Shown here: positions 17,193 to 53,238 of the stretch, in pieces
How the letters are laid out: each line of letters starts with the position of its first letter
Position numbering within the stretch: the first letter of the stretch is position 1
DNA from: Podarcis melisellensis
Lineage: Eukaryota
DNA: 64,000 nt
Assembly (NCBI GenBank): GCA_964234715.1
Contig: OZ174277.1
Direction: 5' to 3' (one strand)
Made by a program: the position numbers and the translations under genes
Notes under the pieces: generated by a model
Told to the model about the DNA's origin: nothing
Database searches by the model: none
Seen by the model: the letters and a program-made list of their open reading frames with translations, nothing else

Positions 17193-18890
17193 CTGCAGGA
17201 AAAAAAGTTGACCTTAATACTGCGTCTTCACTGCGCTTGACCCCTTCAGCTGAAGAAGGAGGGTTTCCTGACTCACACCCCCTTAGACCCCACAACTCCA
17301 AATATGTTAGCCTCAAAACTGATCTATAGCCTGCCCCATGAATCACACAACCTGAAAAGTGATAGTCTTTGGAATAACTATACACCCAAAAAGCGCCTCA
17401 GGGTGCTCTTTGTGCCAGCCTCTTCCCTTTCTCACACGCGCTTGACAAGTGACCAAACCAATGAAGCTATTTATTCAGTTTCCACCTCTAAGTGCTCCAA
17501 CCATGTTCTTCTACAGTATGGAGTAGGCAAAAAAAAAAAAAGGGTGGGGGACTGGCAATCAATCGCAGCTGATCAAAAAATCCCTACTCACCCCCATCAC
17601 AACAATCAGCTAATCCCAATCTGTAAATGGGAAAGGCAGGCTGGGCACTAGTTCCAAGACCAGGAGGAGGGAGGGAATGGGTGGGGCAGCCTTTTACATT
17701 CCCACCCACTCCTCCTAAGCACCTGAATGTGTCTGCTGGTGCGCAATAAGAAGCCTTTTTGCCCTGGCTCCATCACAAATGTGCTCCCACCTAGACCACT
17801 TTAGGGGACAGATGGAGGAGTGGCGTTCCCTCACTGGGAAAATTCCTCTCCCCTGCCATAACTATAATAAATGGCTATAAGGGCACTGACATGAAACACA
17901 TTTAATGCAGGTTAGGCATCCTGCTTCACCAGGATTTAAAATCTGGCTTTGTAGCTGGTTAACAAACCCTGCTCAAGAGGGAACCTGGTTAGCTTCAACC
18001 ATGGTTAACAGGGGCACTCTTGCTGTGCCCTTTAGCTGTGATTTAGGCAGGATGAAGGATTTGGCCATATGAGGAAGAAGCTAAAGGGGGAAAGGGCAAT
18101 GAAATCCTAATTTTCCAGCTGGCTGGTTGAGAGAGAGCTTGTATTGCATCTGCACCAGCCCTGAGCAAGAGGTTTTAAATGCACAACCCAATAGTTATCC
18201 CCTATACTTCAAGAATGTGCTATCCTAATTTAGGACAAGGATTGTCAAACAAAAATCAAGTAGATACACTTGGAACAAGAAAAGAAATTGACCGTAAAAT
18301 CATCTAAGGCTGCCATCCCAAATACACTTATTTTAAAAGGATGTTCCATTTAGATGAGCAGGGCTTACCTACAAGTTAATATTTTTAAATTCATGTTAAT
18401 TGCTTTGCCTACTGCTATAATTGATAGTACCTCCCAAGCTTTAAAATGACTGTAAACTCCTCTGCCTTTCATCTCCTGTTGTAATAGACCCTGTCATATG
18501 AAAATGATGAAGAGTCATGGAAGGAGTCACCTTCCCCTAGCACTGAATAAGCAGCCTAACTAGAATGCAAAAAACATTTTCATCCCTGAAACTAATCCAC
18601 TTTACCCAGTGGCAAGGAAGGGCATTTTTGACCCAGTTGCCTAGCCTTCTCATCATGAGTTTTGCAAACATGATCTTGTGATCTGATGTACAGTACTAGC
18701 ATGCAGGATCTGGTGTAAGAGTCCACAAAAGTTATTTGCCTGTAATATATTTTACTAGCCTGCCTGCTAAGAGCCTGCTAGCATCCTGGATTTTCATGGA
18801 TCCCTTTCCTCCACATCCAGCATGAAAAATCCAGGTCACTGGCCTCTTAACAGGCTAGTAAAACAGAAAGAAAGCAAAAAAAAAAAATTT

Positions 18891-19364
18891 CCTTCCAGTA
18901 GCACCTTAAAGACCAACTAAGTTAGTTCTTGGTATGAGCTTTCGTGTGCATGCACACTTCTTCAGATACCCTTCCAGTAGCACCTTAAAGACCAACTAAG
19001 TTAGTTCTTGGTATGAGCTTTCGTGTGCATGCACACTTCTTCAGATACCCTTCCAGTAGCACCTTAAAGACCAACTAAGTTAGTTCTTGGTATGAGCTTT
19101 CGTGTGCATGCACACTTCTTCAGATACCCTTCCAGTAGCACCTTAAAGACCAACTAAGTTAGTTCTTGGTATGAGCTTTCGTGTGCATGCACACTTCTTC
19201 AGATACCCTTCCAGTAGCACCTTAAAGACCAACTAAGTTAGTTCTTGGTATGAGCTTTCGTGTGCATGCACACTTCTTCAGATACCCTTCCAGTAACACC
19301 TTAAAGACCAACTAAGTTAGTTCTTGGTATGAGCTTTCGTGCGCATGCACACTTCTTCAGATAC
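18891..19364. repeat. Tandem array, 6 x 79 bp
   Basis: Units start at 18891, 18970, 19049, 19128, 19207 and 19286. Units 1-5 are identical; unit 6 has two substitutions (19296 G>A, 19342 T>C). Confidence 0.97.
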
Positions 19365-19365
19365 C
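18931..19365 (-). ncRNA. Six tandem minimal type I hammerhead ribozyme motifs
   Basis: Each unit reads GGUAU-CUGAAGA-A-GUGUG CAUG CACAC-GAAA-GC-UC/AUACC. This gives the CUGANGA and GAAA cores, a 5-bp stem I, stem II, a palindromic AGCU stem III and a UH cleavage site. Confidence 0.88.
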
Positions 19366-19366
19366 T

Positions 19367-19406
19367 GGTATCTGAAGAAGTGTGCATGCGCACGAAAGCT
19401 CATACC
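19367..19406 (+). ncRNA. Seventh hammerhead motif in the inverted unit
   Basis: GGTAT CTGAAGA A GTGTG CATG CGCAC GAAA GCTC/ATACC. The variant base keeps stem II intact as a U.G wobble. Confidence 0.85.
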
Positions 19407-21588
19407 AAGAACTAACTTAGTTGGTCTTTAAGGTGCTACTGGAAGGATTTTTTTTTTGTTTTGACTATGGCAGACCAACACGGCTACCTATCTGTAACTA
19501 GAAAGAAAGCAAAAGGTGTATTCTCCCAAGTGAGCTGGCAGAGAAGGGACTGCACTGAGGGATTCACTTTCCTTCCTTGCTCAACCAAGCAACCTGGAGG
19601 AGGAAAATGGAGTACCATGTCTTGCCAGCTCATTCAGGGCTTGTGCAGAATTCCTGGTGGCCTCTGGCTAGCAGATGAGTTGTTCAATAAAAAGGCTGTC
19701 TCCCAGGCTGAGTGCAAACTTTCCTCCTTGTTCCAACAAGCGCATAAAATTCAATCCGTGCCCCACTTGACCTCAGCTTTATGACCTTGACCTTCCTTTA
19801 TGGAGGTTCTGGGCTCATCTCAAGATTCCTAGTAGGAGGGGGATTACCACGAAAGTAGGGCAGAGCAGGGTGATTCTACCTCCACTTTTGCATAGCATAA
19901 GATGATTTGTGTAGTGCCGCCTTCACCAACTGGGTGCTCTCTAGATGTTCTGGCCTACAACTCCCACTAGTCCTAGCCAAAGTCCAAAACATCAGGAGGG
20001 CACAGGCTTGTGAAGGTTGCTGTAGTGTATGAGTTTTGGACCACCTGTACATTGCTTGACGTATTTCAAAGAATCCAGCTTCCTGGAGGGAGCAGAAATA
20101 TGATGAAGTTTGCTGATCGAAGAGGTTGTTAAATTAATAACGCTGGCCATATGTGCACTACAGTCTCAAGAAAGCTCTGGGAATTGTAGTACTGTGTGGG
20201 AACCTCCTTCCTGTACTTCCCTGCACACACACTGAGCTAGAGTTGCCAAGATTCTTTGGGGGAAGTAATGATACTTAAGACATCTATAAGCTTGTAGAGA
20301 TATGCTCCAGTTCTTCTGGCTTCACACAGAGCATTTGCCATACATTCCTAGCTTTACAACTGCTACTCCTCTCCTGCTTTTTATATGTTACACTTGCAGA
20401 AAGGTATGCAGGAAGGCAGCTTGTGGTTATTATTGCAACATGTCTCAATAACTGCAAATTGTATGAACCTCCTGGTTTTCTAACAGCGGTGTGCTGTATT
20501 CAAAATTGCAACATGAGAATACTACACACAGCATCTTGTGAGGGGCTGATGACCTCTATTCCAAGCAAATGTGTTTAGGATCAAAGCGTAAAAAAGACTG
20601 GGAGTTGGTGAGAACAAGTAATCCAAATGGCATCAATTTAGAGTACTAGACAATAATCAGTGAAAGTCACACAGACAATGATAGCCTTCTCTGCTGAAGA
20701 AACTAAGAGACTTCTTAAAGCTTCTTATTGCTCTCTATGAACAATATCCTGTTTCCTTGTACAGTGGACAATGATGAATTTTGGACAAATGGGTACAACA
20801 AATGACTCCAGTTTTTACACACTCCCTGCCCAAGTACTCCTTTAAAAGCCCATTTCTAGCTGTGTCTAACTAAATGCCACTCCCTGATTGCACCAGATAT
20901 ATTTGCCATCTCTCTATAAATGGAAGCCCTACTAGTAGAGTGTGAAGAATAGAGAGTGAATGTAGGAAAACTGCCAAAGGGAATGGAATGAATGAAATTA
21001 ACACACACTCTGACAAGATGACACCCTGACAACTTAATAGCTGTATCCCAACTGTAATTAACATAGTAAAGCACACAGCATCTAAATGGAGCTATATATT
21101 TGTGGAGAGAATGAGGCTAAACCTAGTTTTAAGGGAAATCACAATTTTCCCATGTGACACTAAAAAGGACTAATAAAGGGAAATAAGTACTCCACCACAA
21201 CCTATAGTTAACTTACAGGATTCACTAAGTGGTCAGGGCCCCACAAACCTAGGAAACTATATGCAGTCTTATGTCCTACCCTGTCCTCCAAGACCAACCA
21301 GGAACTCTCTCTAAAATACACCAAGTGCCAAACTGGGCATACAAGACTCACACTAAGGCATGCCACACAACTTTGAGAACATCCTCCAAAGAAGCTCACC
21401 AAACTCTGAGCTGAAATGGTGTAAGACTGAAAGCTTTATTCACATTGGGTTTGGGTGGATAGGGATATGGATGGATAGATTACATTAATATAATTATTGA
21501 CGCTGAGTCCTTGGGATTGGCTGGGCTCTAAATCCAGCAAACAAACAAGCTAGAGTGATGCTATGGTGACCACCAGCTTAATATTTCT

Positions 21589-23390: not shown

Positions 23391-23849
23391 TGCAGTGTGT
23401 GGCTACCAGCAGATCAGCTTTAGAATTTCATATCTGGTTATGCACCGATTCTGCTCACCGACAGCAAGCACAATTCACTGTAAAGCTCCGCCTGGAAATT
23501 ACAGACAATTTCTACACAGGAGAGAATTTGTAAGAAGGTGGCTTGGGAGATTTCCTGCCCGTTAACACACAAGAGACACAGATACACAACCCCGTATCTC
23601 TTCCCCTGGTTGTCAAAGACGCCGCATTAAAATTATGTGCAGATCGCGCACAATCTCTCCCTAGAGGGCCCCCTATTTGCATTGCGAGACAGGGGTGTCC
23701 ATTCTGCGAGGCTATCCAGGCTGGACTGTGCCTGTTCTCTGCGTTGCAGCCGCTATAGGCGCTTCAGAGCCTGCCCTGCCAGTGGCTCCTGTGTCACCTT
23801 AACACCCCTCTCCCCCCACAATTGGCAAAACCCTCCCGTTATATCTCCG

Positions 23850-24910
23850 ACTCCGCTCTTCACTGACATCACACACAAAGCAGGAGCCATCCTACAGCGC
23901 TGGGCGGCTCCCCGCGCAATCCTCACTCCCCGTTGCCTGAGCCAAAAAGAAAAGACCAAACGCAGGGGGGGCTGCGCGTGTGTCGAAGCCGAGAGCAGCC
24001 GGCCGACGTCGCCGTGGCCTCGCGACAACCCCTTCGGCGACTCCAGCCCGGGCCGATCCAAGCCCGCATGCAACGCGCCGCTCCTGCCCTCCCCACGATT
24101 TCACGGGGCGAGGAGATACAAAATAAAACAAGAAGTAAGCAGATCGCCGCGGCTGCAGCCCCAGAGCCAGCTCGTGCTGCAAACAGCGGCTCGCAGGAGC
24201 AGCAACTTACTGGTTTCTGCCAGGCGCGAGTGTCTCTCTCTCTCCCCGGCTCCCTCGCGCGCAGCTGCTCGGCTCGTGCTGCTGTCCCTGCACGCGCCGC
24301 CTCGGAAGAGCTGCCCTTGGCTGACGGCTGAAGCAGCAGCAGCAGCAGCGCGCAGGGTGGAGGGAGGGGAGCAGCGGCGGCAGCTGGTTGGGGCGCGGAG
24401 GCGCCTCTCATCCGACTCAAGAGGCGGCCGCGGCACCTGTGACCGCCTGTCACCCATAGCACCCGCCCCTCCGTGCTGCCTCCTCCTTCTCCTCACGTCG
24501 CCCCCTGACGGGAAAATGCTGCACGACGCCAGCCAGGCGAGGACTAAAGGGAGGCAGCCAGCAGCAGCAAGCGGGCGACGGTGAGTGGCTCTTCCAGCCC
24601 CGTCAGCAGCAGCTTTGGCTCCGACAGCCTGAAGGGACCGGGAAGACTTCCCGCTCAGAGGCTTGCCTGAGCAGGTTGGGCCTCTTTTCAGGGCTCCCTC
24701 CATGCACAAAGCAGCCGCCGCTTCTGAGGGGCGACGGGAGGTCCTGCGTGTGTGTCAGGGGCTACCTGGGCAGCGGACAAGGGGCGCAGCGCGCCAATGC
24801 GTCCTTGGGCAAATGGGACGGTGTCATTGGCCACGCAACTGTGGGCTAGCGACGTCATTCGTTCCTGGAGAATGGTAAATCCATGCACTTTGGGGCAATG
24901 CGACAGCGAG
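23850..24910. promoter_or_regulatory. CpG-island promoter, probably bidirectional
   Basis: GC- and CpG-dense non-repeat sequence. CCAAT boxes at about 24794 and 24827 (reverse). CRE-like GACGTCA at about 24852 and TGACG at 24506. Outward-facing splice donors on both strands. Confidence 0.85.
24211..24480 (-). other. Putative first exon of an unidentified minus-strand gene (5' boundary approximate)
   Basis: Consensus donor CCA|GTAAGT (intron starts at 24210) inside the CpG island; contains a (CTG)n tract at about 24330-24349. Coding status is unresolved. Confidence 0.55.
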
Positions 24911-25668
24911 GGCAAAACCTGCCACCTACCTCTAGGAGTGAGTAGTTATGCCCTTGCTAAGAAGGGTATCAGAATCATAGAATTGCAGAGTTGGAAGGAG
25001 ACCCCCGAGGGTCATCTAGTAAAATCCCTTGCAATGCTGGAACCTCAACTAAAGCTTCCATGACAGTTGGTCACCCATCTTGTAGGGCCTACATGTTGCA
25101 CAGGTTAAGTGAAGTCTGTCTTCTGGATTTTCTGCACATCTGATAAGATCTGAATCAGTGGATATCTTAGGTTTCATAACCCCATCCATTCTGCCATTTG
25201 CTATTTGATAGCTTTGAACAACTATAACCAGATGTTGACGAAGTACAATTCCCATCAGCCCCAGCAAGCATGGCCCATGACCATGAATGATAGAGTTCAG
25301 CAACATGTGGGGGAGAAAGGTTCCTCACACCTTGCTCCTAGGCTTATATGCCACACAATAAGCGAAGTGTCTAGAACAATGTAATACAGTACACTCATAA
25401 ACAGCAAAAAATATTTAGCATCTTGACATTAATATACAATGAACAATAGTTGTGCTGTAGCACAGAAAAGCTCTGTACAAACTGAAGCATCCTAAGCAGG
25501 TGTCTGAACAACGTTCCAATGCCACTTGCTTAACAGTAGTCAGCCACAACTTAGACATAGACACAATAAATGCCCTCTGTCTTGTTCACAAGGCAAACGT
25601 ATATGGCACCCTTTTAATAGTGCTACTCTGAGCTGAATGTAAAGATCAAGCAGGTATTATTGCTATTA

Positions 25669-47074: not shown

Positions 47075-47240
47075 TAGGAATATTGGAAGTTTCCTCAGAC
47101 CATTGGTCCATCTATCCAGCATCATCTACTGGACAACAGCTCCAAACTGAAGACATACCCAGCCCTACCTAGAGATGAGGAAATTAAACCTGGGATTTTC
47201 TGCATCCAAAGCAGATGCTCTACCGCTGAGCTATATGACT
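47075..47240 (-). mobile_element. Squam2-like SINE remnant
   Basis: Matches the flanks of the SINE at 29065-29575. Confidence 0.65.
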
Positions 47241-53004: not shown

Positions 53005-53126
53005 TACATCTGATGATGAAGGGTATTCCAGTCCACTTAGGCCACAATAATAAATGTGTGAGTCTTTACTGTGCGTCAGGCCTGTTACTCATGCTGCTGC
53101 AGACTAATACAGCTACCTCTCTTGAA
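53005..53126 (+). mobile_element. Decayed Penelope-like terminal fragment with dead hammerhead
   Basis: CTGATGA...CCAC[no GAAA]TTAGGCCACAATAATAAA...AGTCTTTA...GCAGACTAATACAGCTACC parallels 19367-19499. Confidence 0.6.
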
Positions 53127-53238
53127 GTTGCCATCTGCAATATAGGGATAAGAATCCTGACCTACCTTACAAAGTTGCGATAAGAATGTATACAAAACAC
53201 TTTGAACATTCCAAAGTGTTATATAAATTCTAAATAGG

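Follow-up and report, generated by a model that had tools for sequence, protein, structure and literature searches.

We analysed a 64-kb stretch of DNA from Podarcis melisellensis (contig OZ174277.1; the whole of this stretch is referred to as the window) in which six head-to-tail 79-bp units, each carrying a hammerhead ribozyme motif, stand beside a seventh unit in the opposite orientation. All seven belong to one insertion of 620 bp (18880-19499), which lies as a single unit in A-rich DNA between the two copies of a target-site duplication (TSD), a perfect 15-bp direct repeat (AGAAAGAAAGCAAAA) that brackets the array, the inverted unit and a tail. This is very probably an insertion of a known kind, made by a Penelope-like element (PLE). 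We consider it likely that a PLE reverse transcriptase/endonuclease produced it in one recent event, with the short end that bears the hammerhead as its source, and that the array came from repeated copying of a short template. For the narrower proposal that the units were reiterated during reverse transcription itself, our confidence falls a little short of even.

Anatomy of the insertion

Tandem Repeats Finder (TRF) delimits the array with a period of 79, 6.0 copies, 99% matches and no indels. Of the 35-nt ribozyme core string, the window has six minus-strand copies and a single plus-strand copy (19372-19406), seven in all against a shuffle expectation of 0.00, and a looser descriptor (CTGANGA, 8-30 nt, GAAAGCTYA) recovers only those same seven, with 0.01 expected. 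An initial annotation of this DNA, made from the letters alone, had described seven intact hammerheads in 79-nt units, six of them head to tail and one inverted, and both the repeat analysis and the string count bear this out. Its predicted minus-strand cut sites are also arithmetically right (for example, between 19252 and 19251).

By direct reading, each unit consists of GGUAU, CUGAAGA, A, a 14-nt palindromic stem II, GAAA, GC, UC and AUACC, a 40-nt hammerhead, after which comes a spacer of 39 nt that closes with GGAAG(G). The catalytic core (CUGAAGA ... GAAA ... UC, with a cleavage triplet ending in H) is intact in 7/7 copies. GGUAU and AUACC form a helix I of 5 bp, helix II comprises 5-6 bp inside the 14-nt palindrome, and the palindrome AGCU stands in place of helix III. 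CUGAAGA is followed by an extra A, and stem II starts with G and ends with C immediately before GAAA (the G10.1-C11.1 pair). In the minimal hammerheads of PLEs, as described earlier, helix II is enlarged and helix I has 4-5 bp, with an unpaired base between A9 and G10.1, the G10.1-C11.1 pair, palindromic positions 15.2-16.2 and no real helix III (Cervera and de la Pena 2014, PMC4209133). The array motifs share all of these traits, and judged by their sequence the seven are minimal type I hammerheads of the PLE kind, in which only a palindrome is left of helix III and pairing there would need two copies, as the initial annotation had recognised. The search with the Rfam model Hammerhead_1 that it had recommended was negative: the hammerhead covariance models of Rfam gave no match at the gathering score in the window, nor at E values up to 10 in 18600-19700. 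These models are expected to miss the motif, as it has no helix III hairpin and carries an inserted base.

The five outer minus-strand units are 100% identical, and the innermost one (19287-19365) has two private changes. Two units, namely the innermost one on the minus strand and the inverted one on the plus strand, carry an A-to-G substitution in stem II that keeps a U.G pair. The annotation had reported this single substitution within a ribozyme and the retained pairing, and was silent on its presence in two units.

The two arms of the insertion are arranged head to head. The unit's 3' end is outermost on both sides, once with and once without the tail, and the two GGTAT 5' ends face each other in the centre. 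The run at 18880-18890 corresponds to the A/T run that follows GGAAGG in the element, which is also found after the plus-strand unit at 19447-19457, and an inverted repeat (I1) reaches through it; this run is the tail-less start region of reverse transcription. The array ends at GGTAT on one side and at GGAAGG plus the A/T run on the other, away from the ribozyme cut site. At each tandem junction, the 5' end is joined exactly to the GGAAGG region with an overlap of one G. On the tailed arm, the distance from the ATG of stem II to 19499 is 114 nt; this ATG opens no reading frame, as a stop follows after nine codons. In the minimum free energy (MFE) fold of the 133-nt piece 19367-19499, the tail strand AGACCAAC pairs with GUUGGUCU of the unit spacer around the T run, forming a stem that resembles the stem-loop at which the PLE of the anole (PAc) initiates. 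The 79-nt units are without the tail half of this stem. The initial annotation was thus right about the extent of the array and the inverted unit, and it missed the 42-nt tail (19458-19499), the A/T runs at the ends and the 15-bp repeat. All features are listed in Table 1.

Table 1. Positions of the features of the insertion in the window
Feature	Position	Strand	Remarks
Left TSD copy, 15 bp (AGAAAGAAAGCAAAA)	18865-18879	.	Perfect match to 19500-19514
A/T run, outer end of the minus-strand arm	18880-18890	-	Minus strand reads AAA + T run
Six head-to-tail 79-bp units	18891-19365	-	Each a 40-nt minimal hammerhead, then a 39-nt spacer
Hammerhead motif 1, outermost	18931-18970	-	Core string and looser descriptor
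Other five minus-strand hammerhead motifs	19010-19049, 19089-19128, 19168-19207, 19247-19286, 19326-19365	-	
Single filler base, head-to-head junction between the GGTAT 5' ends	19366	.	Inverted repeat I6: 1 nt between arms
Inverted unit	19367-19446	+	Hammerhead 19367-19406; stem II G in common with the innermost minus-strand unit
A + T10 run, between plus-strand unit and tail	19447-19457	+	Direct reading
42-nt tail, once in the window	19458-19499	+	Stops at the canonical terminus of the family
Right TSD copy, 15 bp	19500-19514	.	Perfect match to the left copy

The family in public reads

The segment 19208-19700 was compared with two public contig sets (X1 and X14; organisms A and H) and with two runs of raw RNA reads from organism H. 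The contigs are short-read contigs, in which the array collapses. Over the unit and tail, the contig depths sum to 1-3.4 million, whereas the unique flank has 29.6 in X1 and 9.48 in X14; this sum is not a copy number, and as an order of magnitude it indicates a family of roughly 10^4-10^5 copies. At two places, 19285/19286 and 19499, the DNA contigs part into unrelated sequence (agreement 0.42-0.48), which marks the first base of helix I and the tail end as the usual termini of the family. The basic family member is therefore the 133-nt piece 19367-19499, made up of hammerhead, spacer, T run and tail; length and letter variants in 19447-19457 are common across its copies. More than 80 distinct joints in the contigs tie the 5' end of one arm to variable points on an inverted arm, which shows that head-to-head copies with variable truncation are common genome-wide. 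Tandem copies are rare at best. Immediately beyond the tandem junction (19293-19309), X1 has a depth of about 9,400, which amounts to at most a few hundred genome equivalents and less than 1% of unit depth, and variant monomers may contribute to it. At the variable stem II site (19390), G has the larger share of depth in the X1 and X14 DNA contigs, and every covering RNA read has A.

The right junction of the insertion is supported by an X1 contig that begins in the tail at 19477 and crosses into the flank, X1 possibly being the source sample itself. A contig of 2,720 nt from organism H aligns rightward from exactly 19500, with 3 differences in 201 bases, and extends 829 nt further to the left. 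An empty site would produce such an alignment, in which the right flank is the one covered; organism H thus probably lacks the insertion, which would then be recent and lineage-specific. In the two RNA runs of organism H, which probably lacks the insertion, depth on the flank is zero. Reads on the unit come from both strands about equally, and 98% of them continue into unlike sequence and so derive from other copies.

In the relative that dominates expression in organism H, GGTATCTG is directly preceded by ...CTTCTGTTTCAGT (reads at 19285/19286 and 19368). The upstream piece is a splice-acceptor-like pyrimidine tract plus CAG that ends at the first base of helix I, and it recalls the intron of Drosophila virilis Penelope, which terminates at the 5' end of helix I (PMC4209133). 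This relative may be the autonomous element. It has a different sequence after the T run (GTTTTATCCATTCC...) and hence belongs to another subfamily. Within the window, no other family copies were found besides one old, weak relative at 53010-53130 (+), in which a CTGATGA motif is followed about 90 nt further on by GCAGACTAATACAGCTACCTCT, like GCAGACCAACACGGCTACCTAT of the tail (nhmmer E = 0.038 for 53048-53124).

Origin of the array

The features that point to a PLE-type enzyme are the full set of PLE minimal-hammerhead traits, a TSD at an AT-rich site, the head-to-head joints, one arm whose 42-nt tail ends 114 nt past the ATG and another without a tail, and the presence within one TSD of partial copies, six in tandem and one inverted, as in the architecture of PLE insertions. 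The PLE protein of the anole prefers AT-rich targets and cuts and extends both strands; its reverse transcription has an internal start 111-118 nt into the open reading frame (ORF), and two start sites enclose an optional tail of 30-40 bp (Frangieh et al. 2024, PMC11167929). These figures belong to a different PLE lineage and apply here by analogy. Extension of both strands of a staggered cut, which was seen in vitro for the anole PLE, would leave the 3' ends outermost and the 5' ends head to head.

On this basis, the insertion may be pictured as follows. A PLE-type enzyme would have cut both target strands with a stagger of 15 bp, and both 3' ends would have been extended on a short hammerhead-bearing RNA. 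On the left, the A run of the target could have paired with the U run of the RNA, giving a tail-less start, and on the right synthesis would have started at the end of the tail. On reaching the 5' end of the RNA, the left arm would have switched back five times to the GGAAGG region of a template, using the G overlap, to give six units, after which the two complementary DNAs (cDNAs) would have been joined with one filler base. Since each 79-nt unit spans the stretch from the RNA 5' end to the tail-less start, the array is best read as repeated copying of one short template; later unequal exchange may have contributed extra copies. The hammerheads would then be ordinary minimal PLE ribozymes and passengers of the insertion. 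Simple snap-back of one cDNA was rejected as the source of the inverted unit. The plus arm goes on to the T run and tail and the minus arm to a further unit, the arms differ at one position, and the G that they share is absent from five units. Rolling-circle copying of a ribozyme-processed circle was judged unlikely, as both ends of the array lie at the linear termini of the family and not at the cut site.

Several points weigh against this reconstruction. No PLE reverse transcriptase gene with this hammerhead has been identified, and the link to PLEs is drawn by analogy. As the ATG of stem II opens no ORF, the match between 114 nt and 111-118 nt may be partly coincidence. A single template does not predict that stem II has A in five units and G in the innermost and inverted ones; to explain this split, one has to assume more than one template, gene conversion from one palindrome arm to the other or amplification at a later stage, and the G common to those two units suggests either a shared last template or such gene conversion. 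The scheme also does not account for the position of the family 5' end, which coincides exactly with the first base of helix I, and the unit count rests on the assembly, as short-read contigs collapse the array.

Unequal exchange after the insertion is the chief rival account of the reiteration. The insertion would have begun with one or two minus-strand units and grown locally by unequal crossing-over or replication slippage, the birth of a minisatellite without reverse transcription in this step. We regard such growth as possible, if unlikely. The 100% identity of five units next to an innermost unit that is off at two positions looks as if one unit had recently been amplified, neither the window nor public metagenome and viral collections yielded another locus with this junction, and a recent preprint proposes just such a course, in which a PLE terminal sequence is followed by local amplification (bioRxiv 10.64898/2026.07.22.740005). 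The blank scans of the metagenome and viral collections for the tandem junction and core concern sources in which reptile DNA is not expected. However, local growth still needs a first tandem junction, and the one present, which runs precisely from the 5' end to the tail-less start with an overlap of one G, looks like a template switch. The perfect TSD and the probably empty site of organism H also indicate a very young insertion, in which four or five rounds of exchange would have had little time to take place, and PLEs are typically found in tandem already at insertion (PMC11167929). That the number of units is instead an artefact of assembly, the true locus having fewer or more, appears very unlikely. 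Perfect 79-bp repeats of a family of about 10^4-10^5 copies do invite such errors, and short-read contigs cannot span the array. Against this stand the ordered internal variation (the two private changes of the innermost unit), clean joins to unique flanks, a matching TSD and the right junction in the X1 contig, with the reservation that X1 may be the source sample.

The initial annotation had proposed a candidate retrozyme that generates circular RNA. In the full form of this reading, neighbouring hammerheads on a minus-strand transcript would pair and cut it into 79-nt RNAs with 5'-OH and 2',3'-cyclic phosphate ends, which would be circularised by a tRNA ligase and copied back to DNA by PLE machinery. 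The 40-nt motif alone agrees with this: its MFE and centroid structures both consist of helix I plus helix II (-10.1 kcal/mol, z = -1.75), an energy that fits the definition of an active retrozyme in the 2026 preprint. The unit also falls within the reported range of 51-972 bp, monomers of retrozymes have been circularised in vitro by RtcB (PMC7229834), and in principle the hammerheads of a multimeric transcript could cleave as dimers. Predicted folds of longer RNAs point elsewhere. In dimers and trimers, the best fold is a 14-bp duplex between the stem II palindromes of neighbours with helix I strands swapped (dimer, -49.0 kcal/mol), with stem II pairing in trans, and differs from the AGCU helix III dimer that the annotation had envisaged; that double hammerhead is a pseudoknot in tandem RNA, for which no energy can be computed. 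In the predicted fold of the whole minus-strand transcript (-297 kcal/mol), the inverted unit ties one direct unit into a long duplex. The 79-nt monomer folds at -17.4 kcal/mol as a linear and -11.2 kcal/mol as a circular molecule and is no more structured than shuffles (z = -0.56, linear), in contrast to the highly self-paired circles known.

Evidence on cleavage is likewise unfavourable. At the cut sites 19251/2 and 19401/2, neither read starts nor read ends accumulate in the two RNA runs (depth about 100-230), which come from an organism that probably lacks the locus and from standard libraries, in which 79-nt RNAs are lost; back-joined RNA reads cannot be told from the tandem DNA junction. 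PLE minimal hammerheads are active only as two copies together, and their self-cleavage is low even in dimers and trimers (PMC4209133). The anole PLE hammerhead cleaves only with its protein, and no RNA-seq reads end at its cut site in vivo (PMC11167929). In published tests, eight of nine Xenopus dimers failed to cleave. Considering also that the array does not end at the cut site and that the tandem form is rare in the genome, a working mini-retrozyme of this kind appears very improbable. It is likewise very improbable that the 79-nt unit is a mobile one, with transcripts cut by paired hammerheads (perhaps helped by a PLE protein), ligated to 79-nt circles and turned into arrays by reverse transcription of those RNAs, and the same holds for a working generator of 79-nt circles as such. 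Such circles, if they exist, would rank with the smallest vertebrate circular RNAs known to bear a ribozyme. What stands of the retrozyme proposal is that the array fits the working definition of the preprint (see below); the idea of a free-standing generator of circular RNA is not supported, as the array lies inside a TSD-flanked insertion whose outer ends are start regions and not cut sites.

A microRNA gene at 19306-19426 was considered and rejected, as the matches (MIR1222, 66.7 bits against a gathering score of 90; mir-2068, mir-466 and mir-1) are below threshold, occur on both strands and stem from an 80-nt perfect inverted repeat. If transcribed, the inverted-repeat hairpin would be a plausible Dicer substrate. 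Of gene context, a single feature was recovered, a CpG-island-like block at 23500-25000 (GC 0.55-0.68, compared with some 0.42 in the DNA on either side), at a distance of 4-5 kb from the array. At the gathering score, Rfam matches the window just once, with a tRNA at 47181-47240 (-; 34.9 bits). Its T arm is shortened and several of its acceptor pairs are non-standard, so that it may be a tRNA-derived repeat and not a working gene.

Comparison with known systems

PLE minimal hammerheads were found with a relaxed descriptor and occur massively across genomes, often as close pairs on opposite strands, in a study that makes no mention of lizards (PMC4209133). The motifs described here differ in that helix II is a perfect 14-nt palindrome and so could pair between units as well as within them. 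With the anole element Poseidon_Ac (PAc), which also has a tandem genomic organisation (PMC11167929), the insertion shares a hammerhead just upstream of and overlapping an ATG, ends at internal starts, an optional tail and an AT-rich target, the values here being 114 nt and a 42-nt tail. The two are not the same element. The unit strings were not found in the supplements of PMC11167929, the hammerhead and tail of the Poseidon_Ac consensus are unrelated in sequence to those of the window, and here no ORF follows the ATG. The element here is accordingly a separate PLE lineage or a non-autonomous derivative, and its agreement in numbers with the anole PLE is one of analogy and not of identity.

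Retrozymes without long terminal repeats (LTRs) are the other point of reference. Those described in 2020 produce RNAs, in linear as well as circular form, with lengths of 170-400 nt that are highly self-paired and abundantly expressed (Cervera and de la Pena 2020, PMC7229834), whereas the unit here has 79 nt and is not unusually structured. In a survey of 31 vertebrate genomes, non-LTR retrozymes were found in 4/5 reptiles, with consensus lengths of 51-972 bp across vertebrates, a mean of 176 bp in Reptilia and at most seven repeats in 75% of families, and the authors argue for an origin in the terminal sequences of PLEs (Li, Clavereau and Pollet 2026, bioRxiv 10.64898/2026.07.22.740005). Their working definition calls for a TRF tandem repeat with at least two consecutive units bearing complete canonical or minimal type I hammerheads, considered active if the MFE is below -5 kcal/mol; the array has 6.0 TRF copies, six consecutive complete motifs and an MFE of -10.1 kcal/mol. 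With its six copies, the 79-nt unit is inside the published range and of an already described kind, and the initial annotation's view of it as unusually small does not hold against the lengths reported for vertebrates and reptiles.

As a ribozyme or circular-RNA discovery, the locus thus adds little, as PLE minimal hammerheads, their abundance and short PLE-derived tandem retrozymes of reptiles have been described already. Its value is that of a clean and very young natural record of a PLE-type enzyme building tandem and inverted copies, and loci of this sort could be used for in vivo tests of how pseudo-LTRs and retrozyme arrays are born. With the non-LTR retrozymes of 2020 and 2026 the array has in common tandem units, a type I hammerhead that needs a partner copy, co-occurrence with PLE sequences and a proposed descent from their termini, and a small number of repeats, and it differs from them in being embedded in a head-to-head PLE-type insertion with a TSD instead of standing free. 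The anatomy of that insertion agrees with the in vitro result for the anole PLE, in which both strands are extended and synthesis has an internal start.

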